This document shows positions 9,037 through 51,868 of a DNA stretch of 64,000 bases, piece after piece. The translations under genes and the position numbers were made by a program. The stretch is from IMG/VR virus record IMGVR_UViG_3300034072_000926, positions 124,001 to 188,000 of that record. One strand, given 5' to 3'. Under the pieces are notes generated by a model. The model searched no databases and was not told where the DNA came from. It worked only from the letters and a program-made list of their open reading frames with translations. Position 1 is the first letter of the stretch. Every line of letters begins with the position of its first letter.

Positions 9037-11430
9037 TTACTGGAACAACGCGCCGAGGTCGTCGCCGGTTGCTACAATACGGACTGGAATGTAGATGAAC
9101 TCGATTGCCTGCATTGGCTGGATAGCAATATCCACCCAAAGCTCGTGGCGGTCGATACGCTCTGGAGTGTTGTTGGATTCGTCGCAGACTACGATGAAGT
9201 CGTAGAGGCCGCGCAGACCAACAAGGTCAGCCATGAAGCGTTCGAACGAGGTCCTAACTGCATCGCGAGTCTGGAAGTCGTTTGGCTCGAAGAGGAATGG
9301 CTTCGAGAGGTTATCCAGGTTGTAACGCAGGTAGTTGATCAAACGAGCAACATTGATACGATCCAGCGAGGTTTCCAGATTGTGACGGGTCTTCTGACCA
9401 TACACAACCAGACCACGGTTTGGAATGTATGCAATTGGGTTGATCTTGTTCGAGTAAAGGATATCACGCTGACCGTTGTTCAGCATTGCTGCCTTGAACT
9501 CACCCTCATCATCCAAGTAACCAACGCTCGATGCGTTAGTGACCAGACCACGGTTAAAGCCTGCAGGTGCCATCCACTGGTAAGCAACCGAGTCGTTGTA
9601 AGCGAGAGTGCGTAGAGCAATGGTCGAAGGTGGGACCATGATCTCGTTACCGTCGACGTTGGTGCTCAGACCCCATGGGTAATACATACCAACATATGGG
9701 TTGAAAGTGCTGACGCCCTCTTCGGTGTTGCCGTTCGCTGCATTGGTTGCGAATGCGGTAACCGATGCACCATCTGGCTTCAAACGAGCAGGAGTATCGC
9801 CGACGATGAAAGCAACTTCCTTCATGTCAGTGTTCAGAGTGACCATTTCGTCAATCAGCTCAATGTAGCCTGGGGCTGCGAGCAGGTTGAAGTAAACAGT
9901 TTCTGCACGGATGTCGTCGTTCGAGGAGATCGTTGCAGCGAGCTGCTTCACGATCATCTGACGCTGTGCCTTACGACCGAAGAATGGAACACCGTTGATC
10001 TGGTAACCAGATACGTTGGTCCAGGTATCAGTTGCCGCAACATACTGCTTCACATCGTTGGTCGATGCAGAGAGATCGAACAGCTTCATGCCAACTGGGA
10101 AGTTGAGTGCCGAAGTCGATGCAGCTTCGCCGAACGCAATACCGTCGATTGGATCGATATTGTCTTCGGTCGAGATTGCCTTCCAAAGACCGCTATTGTA
10201 ACGATACATCTTTGGATAGTTCTCAAGATCAGAAGTGTCAACCCACAGGTCATTCTCGACCAGAGGTGCACCAGTGCTCTGTGCAGTTGGCTGGCTACCT
10301 AGCAGAAGGACACCGTTGATGTCAGTTGCTGGGTAGAAAGTGCGGTATGGAACCCATGCGCCGTTCTGGTTAACCTTGACGTTGACCGAGAGGTTTGCAT
10401 TGTTATACCACAGAGTGCCATCAGTTGGAGGGCTAGTTGGTTCAGTCGAACCAGCTTCTTCCTTCAGCGATTCCCAGACCGAACCACTGTAACGACGGAA
10501 CTCAAAAACAGCCATGTCATCTTCGTGGCTCAGATAGACCGAACCAGAGACCTGGCCTAGTGCCGACTGACGTGTAACGCTGTAGATTGGAACAAGGGTT
10601 TCATCCCATGCGCCAGTGCCGACGTTGAAAGTCTTCAGCAGCCAAGTTGCCGCAGCCGAGATCGAAGTCACAACATTTGGAGTTTCGAGGACAAGAACGT
10701 CGCCCGCTGCACCAGTTGCTGGACGATAAGTGCTGTAGGTCAGATTTGCGCTACCACCCTTACCAGTCTTCCATGCGCCCGAACCGACAACCTGCCATGC
10801 ACCGGCAAGCTTCTGATACAGAACCTTCTTGTCATAGTAGACGACCATAGCGAAATCGCCATCAGCCGAGTCAGAGATCAAAGGAACCTTCTGACCAGAG
10901 ATCTGTTCAGCTGCAACCTGATCCAGGGAGTCAATGTCATCAACGATCCAGAGATCGCGTTCTGCCCACTCACTACCGGTGTATTCGTAGATACCCCAAG
11001 TGTTGTTTGCAGTGTCCAGCCAATTAGTGCCGTGAGTTGCTTCTGCACGTGGTGCAGTTGCCTTTGGCATCAGCTGTGCGTAGTCGATCGCTGCGCGAAT
11101 GACAAACGCGCGGTTTGCAATACCGAGATACTGGTATGCAGCATGAAGACCGAACTCGTTGAGTTCGTAGCCGTGAACGGAGGTTCCGTTACGGGTGTAG
11201 AAAATTGGATTACCAAACGTCTGGAGGAGCTCGCGCTGGCTCGTAATTGGGTAGAGCTTGTTCGCGTTCTCAGGCAGCGTGCCCTCAGCTACGCCACTAC
11301 CACTTGGTAGCGACTTATATTCGTGAGTGCCGATAATGATCAGCGGAACTGTGCCTTCGCCAGCCGTTGCGTAGTAGGATTCGTCGGTGACGGTAACAGA
11401 CGTACCGGGCGACACTAGAGGATATACCAT
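9037..11430 (-). CDS. gp18: Tail sheath protein, T4 gp18-like, with a large insertion
   Basis: VSPGTSVTVTDES, FGNP, YFNLLAAPGY, AGFNRG, INPI, VYGQKT, LDRINVARL, FEPND motifs. Confidence 0.95.
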   Translation of the reverse strand: MVYPLVSPGTSVTVTDESYYATAGEGTVPLIIIGTHEYKSLPSGSGVAEGTLPENANKLYPITSQRELLQTFGNPIFYTRNGTSVHGYELNEFGLHAAYQYLGIANRAFVIRAAIDYAQLMPKATAPRAEATHGTNWLDTANNTWGIYEYTGSEWAERDLWIVDDIDSLDQVAAEQISGQKVPLISDSADGDFAMVVYYDKKVLYQKLAGAWQVVGSGAWKTGKGGSANLTYSTYRPATGAAGDVLVLETPNVVTSISAAATWLLKTFNVGTGAWDETLVPIYSVTRQSALGQVSGSVYLSHEDDMAVFEFRRYSGSVWESLKEEAGSTEPTSPPTDGTLWYNNANLSVNVKVNQNGAWVPYRTFYPATDINGVLLLGSQPTAQSTGAPLVENDLWVDTSDLENYPKMYRYNSGLWKAISTEDNIDPIDGIAFGEAASTSALNFPVGMKLFDLSASTNDVKQYVAATDTWTNVSGYQINGVPFFGRKAQRQMIVKQLAATISSNDDIRAETVYFNLLAAPGYIELIDEMVTLNTDMKEVAFIVGDTPARLKPDGASVTAFATNAANGNTEEGVSTFNPYVGMYYPWGLSTNVDGNEIMVPPSTIALRTLAYNDSVAYQWMAPAGFNRGLVTNASSVGYLDDEGEFKAAMLNNGQRDILYSNKINPIAYIPNRGLVVYGQKTRHNLETSLDRINVARLINYLRYNLDNLSKPFLFEPNDFQTRDAVRTSFERFMADLVGLRGLYDFIVVCDESNNTPERIDRHELWVDIAIQPMQAIEFIYIPVRIVATGDDLGALFQ

Positions 11431-11534: not shown

Positions 11535-12155
11535 CTATGCAGATTTTTCTTCATCGGGCTTTTTCCAACCAAATAGGTTGCGGATTGCCCACTTTCCTGC
11601 ATCATTGAGATCACGAGTTCCAATGCCGGCCCAGACACCCGAGGGCTTGGGAGGACATTCGATTTCCTTCCAACCAGCTTTCCACTGAAACCACTTCTCT
11701 TGCTTCTGATCGAAGACATAAATGGGAAGAGGTTCAAACATTGCTTCCTTGGCAAAACGATCAAGGAACATCTGGACTGCCCATCCTGTTCCGCCTGTGA
11801 CTAGCCCCTTGTGATCTATTTCTGCCACTGCATAGACAGATTCAGACCATGCGACCTGATACCAGTTACGTCTCAGAAGCGATTTAACGCCCAACGAGCG
11901 GTTCCCTGGCCAGCTACGCTTCAGCGTTCTGCTTGCCCGTTTCAGGACACTGTCGGCTTTCTCAAGCTGTTCCTGGGTAAGTCTGATGAGTTCCTGCCGG
12001 GGCGCATCACTCTTGTGATTTTCATAAGACCAATGAATAACAGACTGACCATCACGACCAGCATTCATGCCCCACTGGAGATCCGAACCAATCGCACCTC
12101 CACTGAGACAGATGTTACCCTTTAGAGCTTCGAAAAGTGGTTCGTCAGTAGACAT
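11535..12155 (-). CDS. Putative SLOG-superfamily (cpYpsA-like) protein
   Basis: LSGGAIGSD, YAVAEID..GGTGWAV and C-terminal AGIGTR motifs. Confidence 0.45.
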   Translation of the reverse strand: MSTDEPLFEALKGNICLSGGAIGSDLQWGMNAGRDGQSVIHWSYENHKSDAPRQELIRLTQEQLEKADSVLKRASRTLKRSWPGNRSLGVKSLLRRNWYQVAWSESVYAVAEIDHKGLVTGGTGWAVQMFLDRFAKEAMFEPLPIYVFDQKQEKWFQWKAGWKEIECPPKPSGVWAGIGTRDLNDAGKWAIRNLFGWKKPDEEKSA

Positions 12156-12784
12156 TCAGCTTTTCCATATAGATCAGCGATCGTTCCATCATTCTCGATG
12201 AGTTCTGCTGATTGATTCAACCATGCCCACTCAGAGATATGGATCTTAGGATAGCGTTCCTTCATAGTATCCTGGAACCATTCACGACCCATCGCAGCCT
12301 GGCGGGCAAACTCGAACCATTCTGGATCAGGACCACGCTTTACGCGGAAGAGCAAGCCATTATGCTGAGTAATGAGTTGACATTCGTTAGGGAAGCGACA
12401 GTCAGTGATGACAACCTTTTCCTTGCCACGCAAACGAGCCTCTAGACTCTTGATCCAGATGCTATCATCGAAATGTTTGCGGAGGATGTCAGTGCCAAAC
12501 ACCTGCATGGCTACCCTTGGAGTGAATCGACCCAAATATGCGCCTGGGCTGTTCTTCCAATCTAGCTTGGCTTCCCACCACTCATCCGGAGTTTCTCGCC
12601 ATTCACGAGAATCAACAGTGTTGCCTTCCAAGAGGGCACGGTCCCAACCGAATACGGCAGCGAGAAGATCTTTTAGTGGATTTGCGAAGCTTTCAACGGC
12701 AAAGCCGTGTTCGCGGACAAGATACTCTCCAACGGTATCCTTGCCCGAACCCTTGAAACCAAGGATTCCGATAACTTGAACCAT
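12122..12784 (-). CDS. Deoxynucleoside monophosphate kinase, T4 gp1-like
   Basis: GFKGSGKDTV P-loop, SFANPLK, TPRVAMQVFGT, VITDCRFPNE, HISE, IENDGTI. Confidence 0.92.
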   Translation of the reverse strand: MVQVIGILGFKGSGKDTVGEYLVREHGFAVESFANPLKDLLAAVFGWDRALLEGNTVDSREWRETPDEWWEAKLDWKNSPGAYLGRFTPRVAMQVFGTDILRKHFDDSIWIKSLEARLRGKEKVVITDCRFPNECQLITQHNGLLFRVKRGPDPEWFEFARQAAMGREWFQDTMKERYPKIHISEWAWLNQSAELIENDGTIADLYGKAECLLTNHFSKL

Positions 12785-16770: not shown

Positions 16771-17895
16771 ATGTCAATGATGCAAATGTGGGACCGCAAG
16801 AAAGGTCACAATCACGACTTTATTGACCGACAGGTTCGTGAGCAATTCCGTATCGGTGGTTGCGAAGTTCTATGTCACAAATATCTAGGTGTCCATGACC
16901 AGGGCGAGCAAGGTGACGCGACTCAGCCTAGTGCCGCTAAGTCTAAGCTAAAGGGTATTCGTCAGATCCAGGACTTGTTCTTCCTTGAGAACAGGGACAG
17001 GGCATATGACACGAATGTCTATGAACTCCGCGGTGCATACAATGTTCAGGACTACGAGTTCAACATGACTCAGTTCGCATTGTTCCTCGATACTGATACA
17101 CTCTATTTGGAATTCCACATTCGAGACACTGTGGACAAGATCGGTCGCAAGCTTATGAGCGGAGACGTGTTGGAGTTTCCCCATCTCCGCGACGAGATGC
17201 TCCTTGAGGAAGATGCTCCGGCGGTCAATAAGTTCTATGTAGTTCAAGACGTTACACGAGCGGCAGGCGGTTGGGCCCAGAACTGGCGCCCATATCTCTT
17301 CCGTGTAAAGCTGAAACCTCTCACCGATAGCCAGGAATACAAGGACATTTTGAACCAAGCCGCAATCGGACCTGATGGCGATGATAGTGGTTTCAATGTT
17401 CGTGACCTTATCAGCGATTTTAGGGATCAAATCGGTATCTCTGATGCGATTGCAGAACAAGCAGAAGCTGAAGTTCCGTATCGCAACTTTGAGACTGCTC
17501 ACTTCTATGTCGTTCCAGGTGATGAAATGGGCAAGCAATATCCATGGATCTTTGCAGGTGACGGTAAACCACCAAATGGCGCAGAACTAGCAGGATCAGG
17601 AACCAGCTTCCCGTCCGAACCCAATCCAGGTGATTGGTTCCTCCATACCGGCATGGAACCAAATGTGCTCTACCAGTTTGCTGGAAACGTAGAGCTTGAT
17701 CCATTCGGTGATCCTCAACCAGCCCCCGGTGGCACTTGGCAGCGTCGAGAAGTTGACCTCCGTAAGAAATGGCAGGCAGCTCATAGGATTCTACAGAGTC
17801 ACATCAATAACAACAATTCGGCCATGATCGGTGGCGAAGAAGTCAAAGAAAAGCAGATGCTTTCTAAGGTCATCAAACCGAAGGCAGACTTTTAA
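16771..17895 (+). CDS. Neck/head closure protein, T4 gp14-like
   Basis: IQDLFFLENRDRAYD, IGRKLMSGDVLEFPHL, FYVVQDV motifs. Confidence 0.7.
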   Translation: MSMMQMWDRKKGHNHDFIDRQVREQFRIGGCEVLCHKYLGVHDQGEQGDATQPSAAKSKLKGIRQIQDLFFLENRDRAYDTNVYELRGAYNVQDYEFNMTQFALFLDTDTLYLEFHIRDTVDKIGRKLMSGDVLEFPHLRDEMLLEEDAPAVNKFYVVQDVTRAAGGWAQNWRPYLFRVKLKPLTDSQEYKDILNQAAIGPDGDDSGFNVRDLISDFRDQIGISDAIAEQAEAEVPYRNFETAHFYVVPGDEMGKQYPWIFAGDGKPPNGAELAGSGTSFPSEPNPGDWFLHTGMEPNVLYQFAGNVELDPFGDPQPAPGGTWQRREVDLRKKWQAAHRILQSHINNNNSAMIGGEEVKEKQMLSKVIKPKADF

Positions 17896-28782: not shown

Positions 28783-28810
28783 ATGAACCTCAATGAAAGT
28801 TGGAGGCAAT

Positions 28811-29413
28811 ATGAAAAAGTTCCTTGTCGTTATCGACACACAATATGACTTCGTTATGCCAAAGGGTGCCCTCTATGTGAAGGGCGCAGAGAACATCATT
28901 CTCCCCGGCATCGACTTCCTCGCAAATCTGAACCCCGACGAATATTGTGGTGTTCTGTTCACCTACGACACTCATACGCCGTCGGTTTACGAGGGTTCGC
29001 CCGAAAGCGAACAATTCCCCATTCACTGTGTGAAGAGGACGTTCGGCTGGACCAACGTCTTCAACGACCAAATCATCCACAAGAACATTCCAGTGTCGCG
29101 TCTCGACAAAGGTGTGTTCAATATGTGGGAAGAAGCTGATCTGCGTATGGAACGCTTTGATCGTTCCACTTCTATTATCCGTCCAGTTATTGACATGCTG
29201 GTCCGAGACGACTTTTTCCTCGATCTGGCCAGCAAGGACGTTGAAATCGAAATCTTCGGCGTAGCTTCCGACTATTGCGTGAAGTGGGCGGTTGATGGTT
29301 TCGTGAAGCGTGGCTTCAAGGTCAAGGTCATCGACGAACTGTGCCGTGGCATCATGCAGACGGCTCAGGAAACTTTCGATGCTCCTGAATATGTAACGGT
29401 CGAGGTCGTGTAA
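28811..29413 (+). CDS. pncA: Nicotinamidase (isochorismatase family)
   Basis: VVIDTQYDF (Asp), TYDTH and IHC (metal ligands), DKG (Lys), GVASDYCV (Cys); GGAGG RBS. Confidence 0.92.
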   Translation: MKKFLVVIDTQYDFVMPKGALYVKGAENIILPGIDFLANLNPDEYCGVLFTYDTHTPSVYEGSPESEQFPIHCVKRTFGWTNVFNDQIIHKNIPVSRLDKGVFNMWEEADLRMERFDRSTSIIRPVIDMLVRDDFFLDLASKDVEIEIFGVASDYCVKWAVDGFVKRGFKVKVIDELCRGIMQTAQETFDAPEYVTVEVV

Positions 29414-34359: not shown

Positions 34360-34866
34360 ATGAAGGCATTTCTTATCGCTGCTGCGGCAGCTCTGGTCGC
34401 TGTCGCGGCTCCTGCTTCGGCTCAGGAATTCACCGGTGCTCGTCTGGGCGTAACCGGCGGCTACGACAACATCCAGGACCGTGAAGGTTTCACCTACGGT
34501 GTGGTCGCAGGCGTTGATGCCCCCATCGCAAAGGGCGTGACCCTGGGCGTGGAAGCAACCCTGGAAGATTCGACCACCGGCGCTGCCGGTCTGGAAGCAT
34601 CGCGTGAGCTGGGCGTTGCCGTCCGCGCTGGCGTGAAGGTTCTGCCCAAGGCTCAGGTCTTCGGTAAGGTCGGTTATACCAACGCTCGTCTGGAACTGTC
34701 TGGCACCAACGCCGGCGTTTCGCTGGAAGGTCTGCGTTACGGCGGCGGCGTCGAATACGCTCTGACCGAGAAGCTCTACACCACTGTTGAATACCGTCGT
34801 TCGGAATACGAAGACGGCGTCGGCGGTCGTGACGGCGTGCTGGTTGGCTTCGGCTTCCGTTTCTAA
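34360..34866 (+). CDS. Small outer-membrane beta-barrel protein (Omp25/OmpA-like, about 8 strands)
   Basis: Signal peptide MKAFLIAAAAALVAVAAPASA, amphipathic strands, GGGVEY motif, and C-terminal GFGFRF (BAM-type Phe). Confidence 0.9.
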   Translation: MKAFLIAAAAALVAVAAPASAQEFTGARLGVTGGYDNIQDREGFTYGVVAGVDAPIAKGVTLGVEATLEDSTTGAAGLEASRELGVAVRAGVKVLPKAQVFGKVGYTNARLELSGTNAGVSLEGLRYGGGVEYALTEKLYTTVEYRRSEYEDGVGGRDGVLVGFGFRF

Positions 34867-34887
34867 TCCGTTAGAAACGAACCGGGG

Positions 34888-34917
34888 AAGGGTAGGGAGA
34901 AATCCCTACCCTTTTTT
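34888..34917 (+). terminator. Intrinsic terminator
   Basis: AAGGGTAGGG-AGAAAT-CCCTACCCTT followed by TTTT. Confidence 0.8.
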
Positions 34918-35054
34918 GTGACTATCCGACTACCCTAGAGCCTGTTTGACTGCTCGTTGGGCGTCTACGGGGAATCTAGATAGTAAACAGGTGCCCAAAG
35001 ACAGACTTGACTTTGGACAATAGAATGCTACATTTGATATCGAAGGAGTAACGT

Positions 35055-35483: not shown

Positions 35484-35966
35484 ATGTCCAACGCAATCAA
35501 TCTGTCTGACATCAACAAGCTCACTGACTCCTATCCTTGGGTGTCGGTGTTTTCGTTGTGTGCAGAACTCGGATATCTCAACGGGGATATCTCGGTCGAT
35601 GGTCTGCAGGAAAATGTCGAGATCACGTTTTATCGTAAAAGCCGCAAGATCGGCTATATCCGCAAAATCCTGGCAATCATCCACCCGACGAATCCGAATC
35701 TTCCACACATGAACCTAGAAGTGAAGGGTTCATATGTCGAGTGCTTCACAACTTGCAATTCCGAATTGCAGAATGAAGCAATGGCATTCACCGAGTCTTG
35801 CCCGGACACTGATCACCTCACAAGCTTCTGTTCAGTCGAATCTGCCGGCCTCCGGTTCGGGTTCAGGCTGACTGAAGCTGGCATGAAACTGAACACCTAT
35901 CAGCAAACCAAGCTGCTGGCACAGAGCGTTTTCAAACTCACTCAGTTCTTGCGTTACGGTCTATAA
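35484..35966 (+). CDS. Hypothetical protein
   Basis: AGAAAGG RBS before MSNAIN. Confidence 0.65.
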   Translation: MSNAINLSDINKLTDSYPWVSVFSLCAELGYLNGDISVDGLQENVEITFYRKSRKIGYIRKILAIIHPTNPNLPHMNLEVKGSYVECFTTCNSELQNEAMAFTESCPDTDHLTSFCSVESAGLRFGFRLTEAGMKLNTYQQTKLLAQSVFKLTQFLRYGL

Positions 35967-36002
35967 GTCGAAATAAAAACGGTAGAACGTTTTCTTTATT
36001 GA

Positions 36003-36046
36003 TAAACGAACCATACCGCTATTAGTCAAGAGGTATGGTTCGTTTA
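36003..36046. repeat. Perfect 15-bp inverted repeat
   Basis: TAAACGAACCATACC (36003-36017) and GGTATGGTTCGTTTA (36032-36046). Confidence 0.9.
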
Positions 36047-36065
36047 GTCATTTGTAATTCCGAAT

Positions 36066-41013: not shown

Positions 41014-42345
41014 TTACTTCTTGAGACCCTTTGCACCCTTGCCGCTGATTGGCGACTGGGTGTTCTCCTTGCCGTCCTTCTTATTAAGAAGTGCCGAAGT
41101 ATTGCCCTTATCAGCAACCTTCTTGAGCTCTTCCTTGCCATTCTGGACCGTGTTCTTGACCTTTACATCGGCGACCTTAGGCGCCTTTTCAAGAGCGTGA
41201 CCAGTGTGGCCCTTACCCTTTACTTCAACTGGGTCGCCACCGAGACGATCCTTACCCTTGTGCGATGGAAGCGTTGCCTTGGTGTTTACCGAGACCTTGC
41301 CCTCTTCGCCGACCTGAGCACCTTCGACGTTCTGCAGCTTGTCAGAAATCGTTTCGAGACCCTTGAATGCCTCATGCAGTTCTGCAATCAGAGCATCAGC
41401 AGATTCCTCAACAGTATCAAGGTATTCAATAACCTGTCCAACGTGATTCACAATAGCTTCTGCGTACAAACTGCACTCTTGATCACTAATTTCCGCACCA
41501 GCGCGGTCAAACGCTTCGGCTAGAGAATTTTTAGCAACTTCAGAAATTTTATAAAAAGGAATTGAGGTATCCATGTCAATTGCTACGGTAATACCAGACT
41601 GACTTGTTACTTCATAAACCATAGAAGCATAGTCACCTGAGCTATTAACTTCTGGAACAATGTTCTCGTAGCCGTGGACCTGATTTAAATCGGAACTTAC
41701 CTCACCAAGCTGCTCGCCTTCATACTGAAGAGCAGCCTTTTCACGACGGGCCTTGTCAGCAACCATGTTCAAACCAGCGACGCGACGACCAACCTTTTCG
41801 TCATCGGCGGTTGGATGATCACGATCCTTGCGGGCCTTCTTTGCGTATGTCTTCATTGTATCAAACGACAGTTCGTCAATGCGAGCTTCTTCAACAGAGT
41901 TATCAATATGCTCTCTGACCATGTCAATATGAGCAGCAATTGCCGACGCATATGCTTGGATTTCTGCATTACTAATTGACGAGCCTTCGTCTGCGAAAGC
42001 TGCCTCGAGAGCGCTTGCTGCCGTTTCTTCAGTCTGATAGAATGGCACTGAGGTGTCCATATCAATAGCAACCGTTTCACCATTATGACTGGTAACTTCG
42101 TAAACCATAGAAGCAAAATCACCCGAGATGTTAACCTCTGGAATAATGTTCTCATAGCCATGGACCTGATTTAGATCAGGACTTTCACCTGCTTCAGCAA
42201 TTTCCGACTCAGCAACCGGATTAGTCAGCCGATTGTGAACGTTCCTGGCTGCGTCAACGAACCACTCGTGAAGAGCGGCAGCGGCATCATCGGTGTTATC
42301 ACTGTTAAGCGATTCCATGATGTCCATAAGAGTAATCTTGTTCAT
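41014..42345 (-). CDS. Prohead core-like protein with an internal duplicated domain
   Basis: Shares LHEWFV and C-terminal motifs with 39878-40849; two copies of DLNQVHGYENI.PEVN.SGD.ASMVYEVTS. Confidence 0.75.
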   Translation of the reverse strand: MNKITLMDIMESLNSDNTDDAAAALHEWFVDAARNVHNRLTNPVAESEIAEAGESPDLNQVHGYENIIPEVNISGDFASMVYEVTSHNGETVAIDMDTSVPFYQTEETAASALEAAFADEGSSISNAEIQAYASAIAAHIDMVREHIDNSVEEARIDELSFDTMKTYAKKARKDRDHPTADDEKVGRRVAGLNMVADKARREKAALQYEGEQLGEVSSDLNQVHGYENIVPEVNSSGDYASMVYEVTSQSGITVAIDMDTSIPFYKISEVAKNSLAEAFDRAGAEISDQECSLYAEAIVNHVGQVIEYLDTVEESADALIAELHEAFKGLETISDKLQNVEGAQVGEEGKVSVNTKATLPSHKGKDRLGGDPVEVKGKGHTGHALEKAPKVADVKVKNTVQNGKEELKKVADKGNTSALLNKKDGKENTQSPISGKGAKGLKK

Positions 42346-42463
42346 TTTATCTCCTTCGCGAAAGGATTTGGGGAGGACAATGCCTCCAAACATATCTCTT
42401 ATTTATGGTTTGGATTGACATCACCTACAGAACACCTTAATATGAAGACCAAAGGAGTAACCC

Positions 42464-43220: not shown

Positions 43221-43471
43221 ATGCCTTCGTCTTCTCCACCGGCACCAATACCATACATGATGCCAAGAAGCTCTTGCTTCTTGACCATTTCAAGGTTCTT
43301 AGTGGAGCGGATCTTCTTTAGACGGTTAACCATCTTCAGTGTCAGTGTAGGCTTGCGAGTGTCTCCAAGCCTATGCTTATTGAGATCATCTGACTGAGGA
43401 TCATAGAAACCAACGTCTTCCTGATCATCCTCAACTCGCATGTTCTCCCTTAGGATTTCAAGATACCTCAT
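43217..43471 (-). CDS. Small portal-adjacent head protein
   Basis: Coupled to the portal stop; TRKPTLTLKMVNRLKKIR. Confidence 0.6.
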   Translation of the reverse strand: MRYLEILRENMRVEDDQEDVGFYDPQSDDLNKHRLGDTRKPTLTLKMVNRLKKIRSTKNLEMVKKQELLGIMYGIGAGGEDEGI

Positions 43472-45210
43472 AGTTCTGCATCCTCTCCACTAGAGCCTTC
43501 ATCGCCTGAGATCGGACTTGCACCCGAGACGTCATCGCCCATATCGGCTTCTTCGTCTCCCATGTCATCGCCCATATCCATTTCGTCTTGCGGACGAATA
43601 CCAATTCCTTCCATACCAACTGGGGCACTTCCAGCAAAGCTGTCATCGGCTCCAGTTCCCTTGGTCAGGTCACGATTTTCTTCACGCCACATACGTTCGT
43701 TTTCGTTGATCTGTTCTTCAGTCAGACCCAAATACGTGGTCATTAGCCAACGTTTCGAGAAATGCTTCATTTCAGCAAGTGGCTGATAGACGCTGATAGC
43801 CGCAGAGTCTCGTTCAATCTTCGCATAAACGCCGAAGTTCTCAGGAGGATTGAAGTTGAGTTCGAACATCGAAACGTCGATGTTGTCAAAGCCACGACGC
43901 TTAACAAAGAGCTTGAACTCATCATCGAATACTGGACTCAGAAGATTCTGTAGACGCTGACAATACTGCGCGAAACGGAACTCCTGAATGTAAGCCGTGC
44001 CTACTCGACCATCGTTAAAGGACTGTGTGCCATCCTCAGGACCAGTTGGGAGATAGCTAGAAGGAACACGAAGACCGCGAAGAAGCTTGTTGGTCCAGAA
44101 CTTCAAGTCGTCAATCTGACCAAGGTTTTCACCAGCTGGGAGAGTTTCAACTCTCGAACCACGACCTTCGGCCGACTGAGCGAAGAAGAAGTCTTCCATC
44201 ATGCTCATTGGATTGTAGGTTGCATCGCCCATGTTTGCACCACCGCCGGTCCTGCTTGGGAAACGACGCTGATGAATCTCGTTCTTGACCTTTTCCAAAT
44301 AGGTACCGACCCTATGCAGAGGCATGCCGCCGACGTCAATGTAGAACACTCGACGTTCAGGGGCTCGCTGGATTCGGTAAATGATGATTGCTTCTTCGAG
44401 CAGTCCTTTTTCTCGCCAAACCTTGTAGACAGACTCGAGAATGCTTGTGCCGAATGGCCAGTTGGAATCAAGACCTTCAGAGAGCGATAGATGCACCACG
44501 TGAGTAGCTTCAACAGCCGTCAGAGAGGTTTCTCCATCAAAGCGACTGTTGTTAGGGTTACCATGCCCCCAACGCTTAGAATCCTTTGTAGGGCGTTGGA
44601 AAGTCATCTGACTTGTTCCACCTACTAGGTTGTTACCATACTTCTCAGGAGCAGTAGCAGTGAAGCTGGACAGATTGAGATCAAGATCACGGAAGACATA
44701 AGCCTCAGGTAGCTTGCCTTCTGCTTCATTGACTAGGATCTTTTCAACCTTTGCTGGATCAACATAAAACCAACGTAGGGTTTCTGGATCACGAACAAAG
44801 AACTGATCACCATATTTGAGGGTGCTACGGAACATCCTCCAAATACGCTTCTTGAAATCGTTAATCTTCGACCACTGCATCAAACAAGTCTTGAGAATCT
44901 CAACCTCAGTCTCACTTGCTTCCTTGCGATACTTGATCTCAAAGACCTCATCGGACTTCTCATCCTTCTGAGTGCAAAAGTCTGCAATCGTATCAAGGGC
45001 AGCATTGACCTCAGAGTCGTTATCCATGTCATCATACTGACCATAACGGTCAATACGCATTGGAGAGCCCTCGTAGACTTCTGGAAGAGGACTGGAGAAA
45101 TTAGCTGAACTGCTATTGCTGGACACGTTGCCAAAGTCGCGAGACTTGGCCAGTTGCCTCTGAAGCAACTGTTGAACGGGTACCATTTGCATATGCTTTT
45201 TGTAAGACAT
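43468..45210 (-). CDS. gp20: Portal protein, T4 gp20-like
   Basis: MDNDSEVNAALD, LEEAIIIYRIQRAPERRVFYIDVG, EDFFFAQ, GRGSRVETLPAGENLG, LRVPSSYL. Confidence 0.96.
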   Translation of the reverse strand: MSYKKHMQMVPVQQLLQRQLAKSRDFGNVSSNSSSANFSSPLPEVYEGSPMRIDRYGQYDDMDNDSEVNAALDTIADFCTQKDEKSDEVFEIKYRKEASETEVEILKTCLMQWSKINDFKKRIWRMFRSTLKYGDQFFVRDPETLRWFYVDPAKVEKILVNEAEGKLPEAYVFRDLDLNLSSFTATAPEKYGNNLVGGTSQMTFQRPTKDSKRWGHGNPNNSRFDGETSLTAVEATHVVHLSLSEGLDSNWPFGTSILESVYKVWREKGLLEEAIIIYRIQRAPERRVFYIDVGGMPLHRVGTYLEKVKNEIHQRRFPSRTGGGANMGDATYNPMSMMEDFFFAQSAEGRGSRVETLPAGENLGQIDDLKFWTNKLLRGLRVPSSYLPTGPEDGTQSFNDGRVGTAYIQEFRFAQYCQRLQNLLSPVFDDEFKLFVKRRGFDNIDVSMFELNFNPPENFGVYAKIERDSAAISVYQPLAEMKHFSKRWLMTTYLGLTEEQINENERMWREENRDLTKGTGADDSFAGSAPVGMEGIGIRPQDEMDMGDDMGDEEADMGDDVSGASPISGDEGSSGEDAEL

Positions 45211-45245: not shown

Positions 45246-47726
45246 TTAGACAGTTTGGTCTGCTACTCGACGAGTGTTCTTATTACCCTCTTCTAGTAGT
45301 CGACCAAGACGATCATTCATGCTGCGAATAGCTGCAATCTCTTCACGCATCAGTTCAGTCTGCTTTTCTGCTTGGTCCTTTATGACCTTCAAGTGGTTTG
45401 CAGAACGATCGCTATGTTCCATGATACGGCTTGTCATCTGGTCCACAGACATAGTATTCCTACCCCTCTGAGCGGGTGTAGCGTTGGCAGGCGCATTGTT
45501 GTTACGCTGAGTAGCCTGCTGTGCTGCGGCGCTCTGTGGGTTCTGCTGTTGCGGCTTACGGACCTGTTCAGGCGCCGGTGTCTTTGCAGCATTGGTTGGC
45601 TTCTTGATATCGTCTGCGCCAAAAATAGCATCTGCCAATAGATCACCAGCTTTGTAACCGGCCATACCGCCTGCGACGCCAGTTGCTGCACTCGCGATAC
45701 CGCCACCAAAAATACCACCAGCGAGACCGCCGATCGCACCGCCGCCGATACGAAGTGAAGACTTGGCGGCGTTCTTCCAAGACATCTCTTTGTTACCAGT
45801 TAGATAATCCAAGCCTTCGAACATACCACCAACGAGCGCGTTCTTACCAAGAGCCTTATATGGAATGGCTTTGAGTAAGCCACCGGCGCTGCCTAGAGCC
45901 CCTCGTCCACCCTTCATCAACTGGCTCAAAATGGTATTACCTGCGCCAGTTCCTGCTCCGCCTGCACCTGCCGGCGGAAGCCCTCGTTGAGCGCGGATAA
46001 TGTCTGTTGCACTAGCAGGAGCGCCTCGACCCAATGCACCCGCTGCTCCGGCACCAGCTGCACCCCGACCTGCTGCGCCTGCGGCTCCACGACCCAAACC
46101 TGCTAATGCAGCACCGTTTCGGCCCATCTTAATAGCACCAAGAGTAAGGGCAAGAGCACCAAGACCCAAACCAACATTAGATACAATGCTTGGCCACTTC
46201 TGTAAGCCATTGATTGCATCATTGATACTCCTGATACCATTGATCAGAGAGTTTGTCATTTCGCCGATCTTCACACCATAGTTGGTTAGAATCGAATTAG
46301 CCAAAGTATCAAGAGCACTGTTGACCGCCGCCACAGCTTCGCGGTCAATCATTTCCTTGTCAAGAACAGGAGCAGCGGTCGGATCTGCTTTCTTGTTCGG
46401 ATCAAGATTGGCACGGAAAATACCACCCTGATTGAAAGTCTGAACAGCTTCCTGATAACCAGAACTTAGAGAGTCTGAGCCGCCAATAGCCAACCTAGTC
46501 AGCATATTGCGTCTTGGATCTGCCCTCATACGATCAGCGGCAGCATTTGCTTGAGCACCTAGTGTCCTAGCATCAATAGCATTACCAGTTTTAACCTGAT
46601 TAGCAATGTTCTCAAGAAGCTTTGCCATTTCAGGATTGATAGCTGCAATTTCAGCTGAACGCTTAGTTGTAATTGCACCATTGGCAATAAACTCCTTGAG
46701 CATCTGCTGACCAGCATCACCAAATTGCTTACCTGCTAGTCCTAGAGCAGAATCAAGCGCATTCTTATTCAGATTCATTGTCTGAATCAATGCTGTTAGA
46801 TTCGCATCAGCGGCGCTATTCTTAGCAGCTTCCAATGCTTCCTTACGGGTCATACCGAGGATGTGAGCCGTCTCGTCACTAGATGCAACCAACTGTTCAA
46901 TACCACTTGCCATCTGACGAGTAGTTAGATTCTGTAGATTACCCTGCTTGCCCGCGATGTCAACGAAAGCAGCAATTGCATCCTGACGACCTTCAAAGCT
47001 CACACCAAGCTCACGAGTTAGCTTTGCAGAGGTATTGAGAGTCTGAGTCAGAGATGCCCACTTCATGGCACCTAGCTTCCTCGCAGACTCTGAACCCTGA
47101 TCCATTGCCAAAGCGAGTTCACGAGTGCTCATTGCCGCAGAGTTAGCAGCATTGTTCATCTGCTGGATAGAACCAACAGATCCCTCAGATGCCATTAGGG
47201 TGCGGTAGTCTTCGGCCTTATCATCGATGTAGCCATTGATCTTATCAAACGCGCCGCCGAAGAGCGCGCCCATACCACCAAGGATACCGCCACTCTTAAT
47301 GGAACTGAAGAAGCCATCCATCTTCTTCGTGCCATCACTCAGCTTATTGGAGAATGAGTCTAGTCGCTGACCAAATGTCCTCGAGTAGCCACCTAGTTCA
47401 TCATTATACGCCTTGATGTCGTTCTGAGCATCTTGGAGTTCTTTGATGATAGTGCCACGAGGTTGCTGTCCGCCGACAGACTTCTGTTCACGAACTTCTT
47501 TGAAAGGATCTTCGGTGCGCCACTGACGCCAAAACTCGTCAATGAACTTCTTTGGCTCAACTGGCTTTGTGGGATCTTTGTTGTCCATCTGCCTGCCGAG
47601 GGCAGACATAATGGTGCGAATCTTGGCAAGCTCAGTGTTAGTGAGCTGGTCACCCTTCGTCTTGTCTAGTCGATCTCCAAGGTTTTCGAACAGCGTCTTA
47701 AGTTGTTCGATATCAAAATCAGCCAT
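45246..47726 (-). CDS. Tape-measure-like protein
   Basis: Long Ala/Gly-rich helical protein with hydrophobic GxxxG segments; start MADFDIE after AGGGGAG; TAAATA at 47749-47754. Confidence 0.6.
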   Translation of the reverse strand: MADFDIEQLKTLFENLGDRLDKTKGDQLTNTELAKIRTIMSALGRQMDNKDPTKPVEPKKFIDEFWRQWRTEDPFKEVREQKSVGGQQPRGTIIKELQDAQNDIKAYNDELGGYSRTFGQRLDSFSNKLSDGTKKMDGFFSSIKSGGILGGMGALFGGAFDKINGYIDDKAEDYRTLMASEGSVGSIQQMNNAANSAAMSTRELALAMDQGSESARKLGAMKWASLTQTLNTSAKLTRELGVSFEGRQDAIAAFVDIAGKQGNLQNLTTRQMASGIEQLVASSDETAHILGMTRKEALEAAKNSAADANLTALIQTMNLNKNALDSALGLAGKQFGDAGQQMLKEFIANGAITTKRSAEIAAINPEMAKLLENIANQVKTGNAIDARTLGAQANAAADRMRADPRRNMLTRLAIGGSDSLSSGYQEAVQTFNQGGIFRANLDPNKKADPTAAPVLDKEMIDREAVAAVNSALDTLANSILTNYGVKIGEMTNSLINGIRSINDAINGLQKWPSIVSNVGLGLGALALTLGAIKMGRNGAALAGLGRGAAGAAGRGAAGAGAAGALGRGAPASATDIIRAQRGLPPAGAGGAGTGAGNTILSQLMKGGRGALGSAGGLLKAIPYKALGKNALVGGMFEGLDYLTGNKEMSWKNAAKSSLRIGGGAIGGLAGGIFGGGIASAATGVAGGMAGYKAGDLLADAIFGADDIKKPTNAAKTPAPEQVRKPQQQNPQSAAAQQATQRNNNAPANATPAQRGRNTMSVDQMTSRIMEHSDRSANHLKVIKDQAEKQTELMREEIAAIRSMNDRLGRLLEEGNKNTRRVADQTV

Positions 47727-48663: not shown

Positions 48664-48882
48664 TTGAGCACTCCAGCTGAAGAGGTCATGGATTTACTTC
48701 AGGAGTATGCGGACGAGGCAAGAGCCCTTGAGAAAAGCCTGATTAGAATCGCCTGGTATATGAGAGGATCAGTTGATCTCGATGCTGCGTATAGGATGAC
48801 ATACCGTCAAAGGAAGATGTCGATGGCTTTGATTGAAGAGAACCTAGATAATACCAGCAAGACCGGTATTATGATGCATTAA
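48664..48882 (+). CDS. Baseplate hub assembly protein, gp51-like
   Basis: AWYMRGSVDLDAAYRMT motif; follows the gp26-like gene. Confidence 0.55.
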   Translation: MSTPAEEVMDLLQEYADEARALEKSLIRIAWYMRGSVDLDAAYRMTYRQRKMSMALIEENLDNTSKTGIMMH

Positions 48883-49259
48883 AGGGCACCATGCTCTAGG
48901 TAGATACCGGCAAGATTGGAATCGCGAAGAACATGCCTAAACTCAAGTTCAATACCCTGCGAGAGTTGCTTGAACTGTTCGAAAAGGGTGGCAAGCACCT
49001 GGTTATTGATCTTCCAAAGACCCTGCGCCTGGTTGATAGCCAACTTGCTATCACCGATGATGACACACTTCTGAATGCCATTATCCTTGGCCCAGACGAC
49101 TGCCCAGATCAAAGCTGACCATTCCGCAATATTGTTGGTCCCCTGGCCGAGGTTCTTCATTGTAAGAGCTTCGGCCTTTTCATTTGGCCTGCAGATTACA
49201 ATGCAGGAACTCATCTTCCCTGGGTTGGGCGCACATCCGCCGTCAAAGTAAATTTCCAT
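48879..49259 (-). CDS. Ribonuclease HI
   Basis: YFDGG..PNPG, TNNIAEWSAL, IGDSKL, RHVLRDSNLA. Confidence 0.88.
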   Translation of the reverse strand: MEIYFDGGCAPNPGKMSSCIVICRPNEKAEALTMKNLGQGTNNIAEWSALIWAVVWAKDNGIQKCVIIGDSKLAINQAQGLWKINNQVLATLFEQFKQLSQGIELEFRHVLRDSNLAGIYLEHGAL

Positions 49260-49295
49260 ATCGCAAACTTAACATCCTGACTAAAAAAGTCAATC

Positions 49296-50412
49296 AGTCG
49301 TAATGCTTCCAGCCGTTATGAATTTGTATGATTCGATCTACAATCGCCTACAGCTTTGCTGTAGGGACTACGGTGTTTATCCATGTTGGACAAGCCAACA
49401 TGTCTGCACACCTTCGCATTTACCTTCGGTTGAACGCTAGAACTTAAAATAGATTATATGGTCATATCATGAAACATAATGCGATTGATATGGGTTCTAA
49501 GAACTCAGGACATATATGTGATGTAAAATAAGTGCTCAGGTTCCCTGAAGCACTTCGGACTTGCGTCGCAGAGCAAGCAAGGCCGTTTAATTTGTAAGTA
49601 ATATTCTATAATCTTCCAGTCACACTGACTTCCCCCGTTCCCGGGAGAAGGTCAAAAAATATATGAAATGTTTGTATTTTCACAATATGACTGGTGTGGA
49701 CAATTCGAAGGATCCTAGGTCTGCCATTATATCCTGCACCTTTTCAGTGCTCATTGCCGCTTCTTTGATACTAACCCACCAGCTGGTGTAGCTTTCTCTA
49801 CAGGACGGTCTGAAGGTCGTAACACCTTCAACTCAACGCTTCCTTTGCTCACACCAGCGGCTCAGGAAGCTTGCTTTCTACTTTTCATAGAAAGTCTAGT
49901 CTTTGACTAGGGCATCCCACTGTTTGGTTCAGTTCGGGATCTACCTAGGTTTCCGCGGTTGAAAATTACCACTTACCAAATCAGATCTACTGATTCGTTA
50001 AGCCCGCTCGGGGTTTGAAATAGTTTAGAAAGCCACTCCTAAAACTTCTTCCACTTTCCCGACCCTAGCCGCGCCCAAATCCGCGGGGAGGGGGTTAGAG
50101 GGCATGATCTGCCAACTCATGTGCTTTTTACATATGTTGCCAACCAACGGCGGGATAAATACATATGCCACAAAGCGTTTATTAAATTTGGGTTTGGTGT
50201 TTGTATCTGTGGGGATATAAAGAGGTCTAAATTTTGCGCTGTATGCCCGGGTTGGAGACTTATACTCCTCCCGGGCTATTTTTATGGTTTGTAAAAGCTA
50301 TAAAGTAGAATCTGCATTCCGTTAAGGATATTTATAAGCAGACTTAATCGTCAAAACGATTACGAATCAGCTACATCTGATTTCGATCTAGGAGCCAGAA
50401 AAACTGGCTCCT
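49296..50412 (-). ncRNA. Unclassified large structured non-coding region (ncRNA and/or replication origin)
   Basis: About 1.1 kb with no ORF of 60 aa or more; more than 10 inverted repeats; TATAAATA on the minus strand at 50329-50336 and TAAATA on the plus strand at 50156-50161. Confidence 0.5.
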
Positions 50413-50417
50413 TTAAC

Positions 50418-51245
50418 TTAATACGACTTTCTCTTCGCAATTGCAAATATTTGTCCAGTCTTTGGACGATCAACATCTGCATAACGGATCAAATAGGGTG
50501 TCTGACTGTTGCGGATTTCACACACCCAAGGAGTAGACGCGATTGCTTCAACGCCACCCTGCTGATGCAACAGTAGGAAGTTCCAGTGGTTGTTGGATTC
50601 CAGATTGTAACCGTCGATGACCAGAGGGTTTTCGGAATATGGATGATAGATGTGAGTCTGATCCTTGGACTCGATAAAGCGAACATCGTTGAGGATGCTG
50701 CGAGGCATCTGAAGATGACGCTTCGTCACCATATCATGCTGGACCAGAAGGTCGATTGGCTTGCTGTAGAGATCCTGCTCGCCGAACGCATCTTCATTGC
50801 GCTTGATCAGCTTACCTGATTGTTCCTTGTAGAACTCGAGAATCAAGGTCGCCATATACTTGCGAACAGTAGGATGGATGAGAGCAGGAGAACCGGCGAC
50901 GCTCATAATGTTGAACATGCGCTCGTTGAGGAAACGTTCACCCTTAGTATCGCGTCCGAGAAGCATCTTGCGGTGAGGTTCGAGATCACTGGGAAGAGGA
51001 GCATCTTCCTTGGCACGTTCATAGGGCTTCAAAGAATGACCACCGTAGGCCAACGCAGACCACAGGTTTTCCCAATCCTTATGGAGGGCTAAGAGCGTCT
51101 CAGGGAATGTGCGAGCACGAGGTCCGAGACCTTCGACCAGAGCATTATAGTAGCCCAGCTCTTGCTTCATGAATTCTTTGAAGCGGATTTTGTCTGTTGG
51201 ATGGACATCGACCATCTCAATAATTTCTCGGAATCGCGTCTGCAT
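50418..51245 (-). CDS. TnpB/Cas12-like WED-REC protein apparently lacking RuvC
   Basis: VHPTDKIRFKEFMKQELGYYNAL resembles the TnpB motif LYPTxxQxxxLxxxxGxxRxxYN; IHPTVRKYMATLILEFYK resembles SQxLQQxLxDLxxAFK; no IGIDLG RuvC-I motif. Confidence 0.4.
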   Translation of the reverse strand: MQTRFREIIEMVDVHPTDKIRFKEFMKQELGYYNALVEGLGPRARTFPETLLALHKDWENLWSALAYGGHSLKPYERAKEDAPLPSDLEPHRKMLLGRDTKGERFLNERMFNIMSVAGSPALIHPTVRKYMATLILEFYKEQSGKLIKRNEDAFGEQDLYSKPIDLLVQHDMVTKRHLQMPRSILNDVRFIESKDQTHIYHPYSENPLVIDGYNLESNNHWNFLLLHQQGGVEAIASTPWVCEIRNSQTPYLIRYADVDRPKTGQIFAIAKRKSY

Positions 51246-51328: not shown

Positions 51329-51868
51329 ATGACCTCTAAGGCCAAAGCCAAGGGAAACGCTTGGGAACTAGCGATTTGTAAGTTCCTCGGTGAAACTCTG
51401 GGCGGAAATTTCCAGCGCGTTCCCAACTCGGGTGCATACATGGGCGGTAAGAACTCCTACCGTAAAGAATACCTCAGTGACACTCAGCAGCGCGCTGCGA
51501 AGGGCGATATCATCCCACCTGATGATTTGCCAAAGCTGAACATCGAAGCGAAGAACTACGCTGATATCGCGTTCCATCAGATCATTGATGGCAATTGCAA
51601 ACAGCTTGACGGATGGATTGATCAGACTGAAGAACCCGCCGATGCTGATGATTTCTCGCTGACAATTTTCAAGATCACCCGTAAGGGCAGCTGGGTAGCA
51701 TTCAAGACTGAATTCCAGGATAAGGTCGATCTAACTGGACTTTCTTATGTGATCTACCGCAAGGCATTCGGCACTGAAAAAGCCTGCGATTATGTGATTG
51801 TTTCGCACGAACCGTTCTTTACTCAGAACAAGGGTGCTGTTCGTAAGCTAGGTGGTGCAGATAATTGA
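51329..51868 (+). CDS. Holliday junction resolvase, Hjc-type PD-(D/E)XK
   Basis: KAKGNAWE, RVPNSGAY, GDIIPP, IEAKNY; TAAATA at 51299-51304. Confidence 0.8.
   Translation: MTSKAKAKGNAWELAICKFLGETLGGNFQRVPNSGAYMGGKNSYRKEYLSDTQQRAAKGDIIPPDDLPKLNIEAKNYADIAFHQIIDGNCKQLDGWIDQTEEPADADDFSLTIFKITRKGSWVAFKTEFQDKVDLTGLSYVIYRKAFGTEKACDYVIVSHEPFFTQNKGAVRKLGGADN

Follow-up and report, generated by a model that had tools for sequence, protein, structure and literature searches.

The analysed window is a 64,000-nt stretch of IMG/VR virus record IMGVR_UViG_3300034072_000926 (positions 124,001 to 188,000), part of a jumbo phage genome of roughly 465 kb. It contains a gene-free gap of 1.16 kb (49260-50417) in which no open reading frame exceeds 57 aa and which, in a greedy gene map of the whole window, is the largest ORF-free stretch (1158 nt, against 543 nt for the next). 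The gap lies between a gene for an RNase HI-type protein and a gene for a 275-aa protein with a predicted TnpB-like fold, both on the minus strand, and its features are as follows.

51329-51868, plus strand: PDDEXK_15 endonuclease gene, divergent from the TnpB-like gene.
50418-51245, minus strand: gene for the 275-aa protein with the predicted WED+REC fold of TnpB/Cas12f/Fanzor.
50390-50412, minus strand: hairpin T1, directly after the stop codon, with no U-run behind it.
50363-50389, minus strand: hairpin H2, near-invariant in sequence (AGAUCGA..UCAGAUGUAGCUGAUUCG, loop GAUGUAG).
50345-50362, minus strand: hairpin H3, variable in sequence.
50329-50336, minus strand: TATAAATA, a T4-type late-promoter motif, inside a covarying stem (about 50312-50343).
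50297-50308, minus strand: conserved CUACUUUAUAGC element.
50245-50276, minus strand: two-tier hairpin P1, followed on the plus strand by a T-run and thus terminator-like there.
50170-50244, minus strand: hypervariable linker.
49961-50167, minus strand: 5' domain, with the helix 50131-50167 around the invariant UAUUUAUC loop and further covarying helices.
49615-49960, minus strand: conserved core shared by two phage clades, with hairpins at 49896-49910, 49874-49894, 49838-49870 and 49811-49830, the EGFOA module, and the 3' helices 49617-49655.
49690-49858, minus strand: long-range helix closing the EGFOA module, in which GCUGGUGUG (49850-49858) pairs with CACACCAGU (49690-49698).
49697-49792, minus strand: match to the EGFOA RNA motif (RF02955).
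49525-49614, minus strand: variable 3' hairpins, including the terminator-like hairpin 49530-49555 followed by UAUUUU.
49266-49293, minus strand: sigma-70-like promoter of the RNase H gene (TTGACT, 16 nt, TAAGTT), predicted from the sequence.
48879-49259, minus strand: RNase HI-type gene (Pfam RNase_H / RVT_3), syntenic in all relatives.

The initial annotation had described this interval as the largest gap in a gene-dense window, rich in stems, and this observation is confirmed. Inverted-repeat and terminator scans recover each stem that it listed, namely 49347-49365, 49382-49402 (part of a longer 49372-49412 repeat), 49530-49555, 49811-49830, 49874-49894, 49896-49910, 49979-49995, 50245-50276, 50345-50362, 50365-50382 and 50390-50412. 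TATAAATA occurs once in the window, the opposing TAAATA is present at 50156-50161 on the plus strand, and the AT-rich stretch noted near 50150-50340 is there, GC falling to 0.38 at 50150-50449. The 801-nt stretch folds at z = -5.4 on the minus strand and z = -5.7 on the plus strand against dinucleotide shuffles, so the region is more than chance.

A gap of about 1 kb is present in the same position in Sinorhizobium phage Phosso and in 8 IMG/VR relatives, while further members were obtained by a DNA pattern scan, and the structured region has been recovered in 12 related phage contigs. In the 7 closest relatives (clade A), 196 pairs are predicted, of which 93% are canonical and 52 carry compensatory changes, against 4-13 in slid controls and a mean of 27 and maximum of 37 in shuffles. 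In an alignment of the core from 12 sequences, 88 pairs are predicted and 44 have compensatory changes, and 4 of 9 positions of the long-range helix show such changes across clade A, the Phosso clade (clade B) and the syntenic relative L166. Identity of the core to the close relatives is 0.74-0.98 in its best-conserved part (about 49615-49914) and 0.27-0.73 to Phosso, whereas the linker has an identity of only 0.25 to the close relatives. Fold energy, z-scores and the number of compensatory pairs are about equal on the two strands, and the assignment to the minus strand thus rests on the EGFOA match, the promoter motif and the G-U count, as G-U outnumbers A-C 32 to 18 in helices predicted on both strands. 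A small protein-coding gene in the gap was considered and dropped, as single-base indels and pair covariation in the conserved core speak against it.

The initial annotation could not match the region to a named RNA family, which is not correct, as the core of roughly 350 nt contains an EGFOA (RF02955; Weinberg et al. 2017) module. The match in the window scores 37.5 bits (E = 1.3e-4), 0.2 bits under the Rfam gathering score of 37.7, and an Rfam search of the whole window at gathering thresholds returned nothing; syntenic hits on the same strand score 27-36 bits in 8 relatives (29.0 in Phosso), and L166 scores 46.0 bits, above the gathering score. A covariance model built in this analysis (R1) scores 133.9 bits at 49686-49838. 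The family is marked by the conserved block ACCGUCCU 5' of the junction and by the AGACCUNGG loop of the last hairpin; correspondingly, GACCGUCCUG and CAGACCUAGG are invariant in all 12 members and align with the canonical EGFOA of locus L047. The closing helix and the two adjacent hairpins that it encloses are also those of EGFOA, and all three show compensatory changes between clades. EGFOA RNAs lie in unusually long gene-free regions (bioRxiv 10.64898/2026.07.01.735769), as does the present one, and are phage-borne elsewhere, since a canonical 68.9-bit copy, with which the window's sequence was aligned, sits in a 790-nt gap upstream of the terminase gene of an SU10-like phage. The RNA described here differs in having an enlarged first hairpin and in that EGFOA forms one domain of a roughly 0.8-kb RNA, enclosed by a long-range helix, preceded by three further conserved hairpins and followed by a conserved 3' helix pair, while the Rfam model covers 108 nt only.

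GOLLD, ROOL and OLE, large bacterial and phage RNAs, are likewise long, ornate non-coding RNAs carried by phages, of unknown function and with a likely self-assembling fold, but their sequence and architecture are different, and no Rfam signal at E up to 10 was found in the region for GOLLD, ROOL, OLE, HEARO, group I or II introns, or a retron RNA. A scan for tRNA and tmRNA and a blastn search of the gap against 50,697 phage records also returned nothing. Among sequence patterns, the 18-mer TTGCTCAYACCAGCGGCT mostly hit lysozyme genes by chance in viral contigs, and CCGTCCT..AGACCTNGG gave 119 loci of which only L047 holds the RNA as judged by R1. A stricter EGFOA consensus pattern found nothing in 185,579 genomes and two loci in viral contigs, which yielded a second true locus, L165.

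The 275-aa protein has no Pfam or PHROG hit, and none of 110 family members has a Pfam hit, including to the OrfB_IS605 models; the only sequence hit is a weak profile match to Fanzor1 (E = 1e-3). However, its AlphaFold model (AF2, pLDDT 95) aligns over residues 4-247 at Z 9-10 (VIA-align) to the WED+REC halves of Cas12f, TnpB (ISDra2 TnpB residues 1-174) and Fanzor (Fanzor2), with all top 50 matches being N-terminal halves of Cas12, TnpB or Fanzor. Foldseek searches of PDB and AFDB agree, the top AFDB hits being IS605 OrfB / IS891 transposases. The TnpB-like label of the initial annotation therefore holds at the level of the fold, namely a WED beta-barrel with an inserted helical REC domain, but the protein corresponds to only the N-terminal half of a TnpB, as it ends at residue 275 without a RuvC nuclease domain, and it has no zinc finger, its translation containing a single cysteine. 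The family comprises 186 clusters (at 50% identity), nearly all of 220-345 aa with a few shorter fragments. tblastn of the protein and of two distant family members detected no member in the 50,697 deposited phage records. The divergent PDDEXK_15 endonuclease (Pfam E = 2e-23), termed a resolvase in the initial annotation, is adjacent to the TnpB-like gene in most sampled lineages and is its most constant neighbour.

A 5' module of conserved hairpins (T1, H2, H3, the promoter stem, CUACUUUAUAGC and P1) starts 6 nt after the stop codon of this gene and travels with it, being found in clade A, in loci L013/L014/L016, L161 and L166, and in part in L156. T1 differs in sequence yet still pairs in 10 related loci; H2 is conserved in clade A, L013/L014/L016, L161 and L166, with a compensatory change in locus L154; both tiers of P1 covary; and the UAUUUAUC loop motif of the 5' domain occurs in L156 and L166. 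A long ORF-free stretch follows the gene in 8 of 13 sampled lineages, while the remaining five have no downstream gap. Core and protein are separable, as the four clade B RNAs, including Phosso, have the core but neither the 5' module nor such a protein nearby, the canonical EGFOA loci L047 and L165 also lack the protein, and L013/L014/L016 pair the same protein with a different core RNA. Only the 5' module tracks the gene.

The motif TATAAATA is a putative T4-type late promoter. TAAATA occurs 20 times in the window, 14 times in intergenic DNA (which is 11% of the window), and most sites lie 7-48 nt upstream of a same-strand gene start. UAAAUA is invariant in the 10 aligned 5' modules outside the window and present as CAUAAAUAG in the Phosso clade, whereas L166, which was not in that alignment, lacks it. 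In RNA libraries, contigs cover the gap in 4 of 4 metatranscriptomes and run from the end of the gene to P1, three of them ending at 50220-50248 and one spanning 49209-49753. The depth is 2-8 and similar over genes and gap, too shallow to give transcript ends, DNA carry-over cannot be excluded, and no contig was placed on about 50000-50220.

The initial annotation also proposed an R-loop-primed origin. In this reading a transcript stays hybridised to the DNA and primes synthesis, which the flanking RNase H and resolvase-like nuclease then process; T4 oriF and oriG work this way. A promoter motif with no ORF behind it, the AT-rich stretch and the neighbouring RNase H and PDDEXK genes would fit, but the reading is not supported and is considered very unlikely, as cumulative GC skew follows gene direction and does not turn at the site, the compensatory pairs (52 in clade A, 44 in the core) show selection for RNA folding which a primer would not need, the core belongs to an RNA family with a solved compact fold, and RNase H has its own predicted promoter. 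Equally improbable is a long leader regulating RNase H in cis, or the decayed 3' half of a once full-length tnpB with its omega-RNA. The RNA does lie directly upstream of RNase H on the same strand in clades A and B, one RNA-library contig spans 49209-49753, and the gap is about as long as a missing RuvC half plus an omega-RNA. However, RNase H has its own sigma-70-like promoter, both hexamers of which are kept in all five clade A sequences aligned over this stretch, and the conserved core lies more than 350 nt upstream of it. In L013/L014/L016 another ORF separates the RNA from RNase H, the stable length of the protein family indicates an ancient truncation, and indels and covariation do not fit a coding remnant.

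The interpretation given initially, a new large ncRNA possibly serving as scaffold or guide for the adjacent protein, or else an origin, is thus partly supported. The gap is best explained, with moderate confidence, as a gene for a modular, highly structured non-coding RNA of about 0.8 kb on the minus strand (roughly 50325 to 49525). The analysis itself establishes syntenic conservation in at least 12 jumbo-phage contigs, helices kept through compensatory changes, a core of roughly 350 nt closed by a long-range helix and of EGFOA class, a T4-type late-promoter motif at the 5' side, and a separate sigma-70-like promoter sequence for RNase H. It is only inferred that the RNA is made late in infection, probably with some read-through from the upstream gene, and that it acts in trans as a folded scaffold, by analogy with two other EGFOA members shown by cryo-EM to fold on their own and form dimers and trimers (bioRxiv 10.64898/2026.07.01.735769). 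Binding is likewise inferred: the 5' module would be the handle through which the RuvC-less WED+REC protein binds the RNA, giving a nuclease-free RNA-protein particle whose core can be exchanged between phage lineages.

Alternatively, the RNA may work independently of the protein, as an EGFOA-class RNA-only assembly or a partner of another factor, its place behind the gene being inherited gene order only. This is possible but less likely. Clade B and the SU10-like phage L047/L165 carry EGFOA without the protein, EGFOA RNAs assemble without protein in vitro, the TAAATA promoter could make the RNA on its own, and all loci belong to one phage group sharing the PDDEXK-to-baseplate gene order. On the other hand, T1, H2 and H3 lie between the stop codon and the promoter and the stem around the promoter covaries, so that RNA-level structure begins upstream of the promoter, L166 has no TAAATA there, and the 5' module is absent wherever the protein gene is absent (clade B).

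A true guide RNA, comparable to an omega-RNA, is doubtful. In this view the WED+REC protein would use a variable stretch such as the linker 50170-50244 to find a complementary DNA or RNA target without cutting it, cutting perhaps being left to the neighbouring PDDEXK nuclease. The position and direction are those of an omega-RNA, the fold is the half of TnpB that holds the RNA and the guide-target duplex, and a hypervariable stretch follows the conserved 5' scaffold. Exapted nuclease-dead TnpBs have long downstream non-coding regions thought to encode guides (PMC10691335). Nevertheless, no match of 11 nt or more to the linker was found elsewhere within the 64-kb window, a 15-nt same-sense match of the core at 47124-47138 is within chance, and the low-depth RNA-library contigs end at the base of P1 rather than after a guide. 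RuvC, which contributes much of the omega-RNA contact in TnpB, is missing, the RNA is 3-5 times longer than an omega-RNA and has a promoter motif of its own, no transposon ends were seen, and the core and the protein do not always occur together. Like TldR and other exapted nuclease-dead TnpBs, the protein is an immobilised TnpB derivative without cutting activity in a fixed gene neighbourhood, with a long non-coding region downstream. Those proteins keep a mutated or partly truncated RuvC domain, whereas here the whole C-terminal half is gone and the family is confined to T4-like jumbo phages next to a PDDEXK_15 nuclease gene. It remains a speculative possibility that the protein and the RNA form a new kind of phage RNA-protein particle, an RNA-guided or RNA-scaffolded machine that has lost its nuclease entirely, carries interchangeable large RNA cores (EGFOA in this phage, an unrelated core in L013/L014/L016), and might recruit the divergently encoded PDDEXK nuclease in trans.

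EGFOA has been an orphan motif, known only as a roughly 110-nt structure of unknown function and, as of 2026, as an RNA that self-assembles. The present locus places it as the core of a predicted RNA of roughly 0.8 kb in jumbo phages, behind a late-promoter motif, and its function becomes testable, as one cultivable member exists (Sinorhizobium phage Phosso). The upstream gene belongs to a previously unannotated family that, by its predicted fold, keeps only the RNA- and DNA-holding half of TnpB, the most radical truncation of that scaffold of which we are aware. If the two work together, this would extend the range of TnpB exaptation to particles without any nuclease domain, and would give a natural example of a protein handle fused to an exchangeable large RNA.

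The region at 49260-50417 contains no ORF above 57 aa and is the longest ORF-free stretch in a greedy gene map of the window, so that the observation made in the initial annotation, which described a large structured gap in a gene-dense window, holds. All eleven stems named there are recovered, the only TATAAATA in the window is located at 50329-50336 on the minus strand, the opposing TAAATA is found at 50156-50161, and the GC content drops to 0.38 at 50150-50449. The 801 nt from 49525 to 50325 fold far better than dinucleotide shuffles on either strand (z = -5.4 and -5.7). The following other stretches poor in or free of ORFs occur in the window:
8118-9036, a second ORF-poor gap, where TAAATA (8935-8940, minus strand) has no same-strand gene behind it for 818 nt
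34485-35027, an ORF-free stretch of 543 nt in the crude gene map
35709-36065, an ORF-free stretch of 357 nt in the crude gene map
Among them, the gap at 8118-9036 is possibly another large non-coding RNA of this phage; the stretch 8118-8930 on the minus strand folds at z = -5.15, and there is no Rfam hit.

The window is part of the 465-kb IMG/VR contig UViG_3300034072_000926, and the only deposited relative is Sinorhizobium phage Phosso (469 kb), which also has about 1 kb of unannotated DNA between its RNase HI gene and its 'Holliday junction resolvase' gene. A search with the RNase H protein gave nine further jumbo-phage loci (seven of them with the gap and the 275-aa gene) with the gene order PDDEXK nuclease (divergent), a 275-aa gene, a gap of 0.8-1.2 kb and RNase H, and a DNA pattern taken from the best-conserved stretch found more members in viral and metagenome contigs. 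The true members (loci are designated here by L numbers) fall into three groups, namely clade A, with the window (L011, L012, L154, L015, L145, L019 and L018), clade B (Phosso, L148, L144 and L153), and L166, which was found through a distant homologue of the 275-aa protein. In L020, a 490,380-bp relative, the equivalent gap holds a tRNA gene (45 bits; positions 2880-2952 of the locus) instead of the RNA.

The gap has the properties of a structured RNA, with the following features assigned from the sequence and the alignments:
50329-50336, minus strand, TATAAATA, putative T4-type late promoter
50154-50161, plus strand, GATAAATA
50245-50276, hairpin, followed by a T-run on the plus strand
49850-49858 with 49690-49698, 9-bp long-range helix
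49697-49792, minus strand, EGFOA (RF02955) match
49555-49530, hairpin followed by UAUUUU, plausible 3' end
49266-49293, conserved sigma-70-like promoter of the RNase H gene
In clade A (7 sequences), RNAalifold gives 196 pairs, of which 93% are canonical and 52 have changes on both sides, whereas sliding the 3' partners by 1-3 columns leaves 4-13 such pairs, and column shuffles give a mean of 27 and a maximum of 37. A core of roughly 350 nt is shared by both clades and L166, and in 12 sequences it has 88 pairs, 44 of them with compensatory changes. The long-range helix covaries at 4 positions in independent lineages. Single-base indels inside the conserved core speak against a hidden coding region. 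The initial annotation had alternatively proposed an R-loop-primed replication origin, which is very unlikely, as GC skew follows gene direction and does not turn here, and the heavy covariation is not what a primer transcript needs.

The initial annotation could not match this region to a named RNA family, but it does have a name. With permissive thresholds, Rfam reports EGFOA at 37.5 bits against a gathering score of 37.7 (E = 1.3e-4), and the same match, on the same strand and at the same place, appears in Phosso and seven other relatives at 27-36 bits, while in L166 it scores 46.0 bits, above threshold. A canonical EGFOA (68.9 bits), which aligns block for block with the window, sits in a 790-nt ORF-free region just upstream of the large terminase, portal and capsid genes of an SU10-like phage (L047, positions 295-1084, and L165, positions 11850-12637), suggesting that EGFOA is a phage RNA more generally. 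The one paper found to treat EGFOA describes it as a putative small RNA found in unusually large gene-free regions, and shows by cryo-EM that two members fold and form a trimer or a strand-swapped dimer (bioRxiv 10.64898/2026.07.01.735769). In the present phage, EGFOA is one domain of a much longer RNA.

Energy and covariation cannot tell the two strands apart, but the minus strand is favoured by the EGFOA matches, by the G-U to A-C count of 32 to 18 in helices predicted on both strands, and by the promoter motif. TAAATA occurs 20 times in the window, where 14 copies are intergenic and most lie 7-48 nt upstream of a same-strand gene start, and it therefore behaves like the T4-type late promoter of this phage. 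The form (A/C)TAAATA marks the upstream edge of many genes, for example before 4504-5088 (minus), 9037-11430 (minus), 16771-17895 (plus), 28793-29413 (plus), 41014-42393 (minus), 43468-45210 (minus) and 51329-51868 (plus), and is a usable late-promoter map. The copy at 50329-50336 has no ORF behind it for 1070 nt, and clade B has CAUAAAUAG at the corresponding 5' edge. On the plus strand, the stretch 50154-50285, in which GATAAATA is followed by the hairpin 50245-50276 and the T-run, looks like a promoter and terminator for an antisense RNA of about 120 nt; however, the same letters form the invariant UAUUUAUC loop of the minus-strand RNA, so either reading could explain their conservation.

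Four wastewater metatranscriptomes hold contigs over the gap at depth 2-8, which is similar to that of the flanking genes, so transcription is likely but not proven. The recurrent pieces run from 50220/50242/50248 to 50392/50407/50422 and from 49404 to 49760, whereas no contig was placed on about 50000-50220. Metatranscriptome contigs from other, unlike sequences match only the short conserved core pieces 49627-49657 and 49881-49913, and related RNAs from other phages therefore seem to be present in the same RNA libraries.

The product of the neighbouring 275-aa gene has no Pfam or PHROG match, but belongs to a family of 186 clusters at 50% identity, nearly all of which are 220-345 aa (a few are shorter fragments). 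With 110 of them as the alignment, AlphaFold2 gives a model of pLDDT 95, whose top Foldseek matches in PDB and AFDB are almost all Cas12, TnpB or IS605 OrfB proteins. VIA-align gives Z 9-10 over residues 4-247 to Cas12f, to ISDra2 TnpB residues 1-174 and to Fanzor2, while a sequence profile touches Fanzor1 at E = 1e-3. On this predicted fold, the protein is therefore the WED+REC half of a TnpB, with no RuvC domain, no zinc finger and only one cysteine, and the designation 'TnpB-like' in the initial annotation is right for the fold and wrong for the enzyme.

Several lines of evidence bear on whether the RNA is the partner of this protein. Conserved hairpins begin 6 nt after the stop codon, and the whole 5' module to which they belong is present in every locus that has a protein at least 35% identical (clade A, L013/L014/L016, L161 and L166), with part of it present in L156. 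The stem around TAAATA covaries, so RNA-level structure starts upstream of the promoter, and L166 has no TAAATA there. In addition, 8 of 13 sampled lineages keep at least 0.5 kb (at least 0.34 kb in L161, cut by the contig end) without genes behind the protein gene, and exapted dead TnpBs with long downstream non-coding regions are on record (PMC10691335). However, clade B and the canonical EGFOA loci have no such protein within reach, three tblastn searches found no family member in any deposited phage genome, and five lineages have the protein and no gap. Moreover, L013 (positions 2790-3500), L016 (2600-3515) and L014 (2610-3510) pair a 65-69% identical protein and the same 5' module with a different large structured RNA in the same slot, which has 205 pairs, 44 of them compensatory against 3-5 in slid controls, and no EGFOA; these three relatives also have an endonuclease-VII-like ORF inserted before RNase H. 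The simplest reading is modular, namely a protein-linked 5' handle plus exchangeable cores, of which EGFOA is one.

Taken together, the interpretation in the initial annotation is partly supported. The ORF-free gap, its covarying helices and the EGFOA matches are results of the analysis itself, while the start and end of the transcript, the activity of the promoter motif and any binding between RNA and protein are inferred. The feature is real, and there is high confidence that it is a functional structured RNA and only slightly less that its core is homologous to EGFOA, whereas it remains possible, though rather less likely than not, that it works together with the WED+REC protein. What differs from EGFOA as already known is that the motif is embedded here in a large modular RNA, and there is a credible but unproven chance that this RNA forms part of a new nuclease-free TnpB-derived particle.
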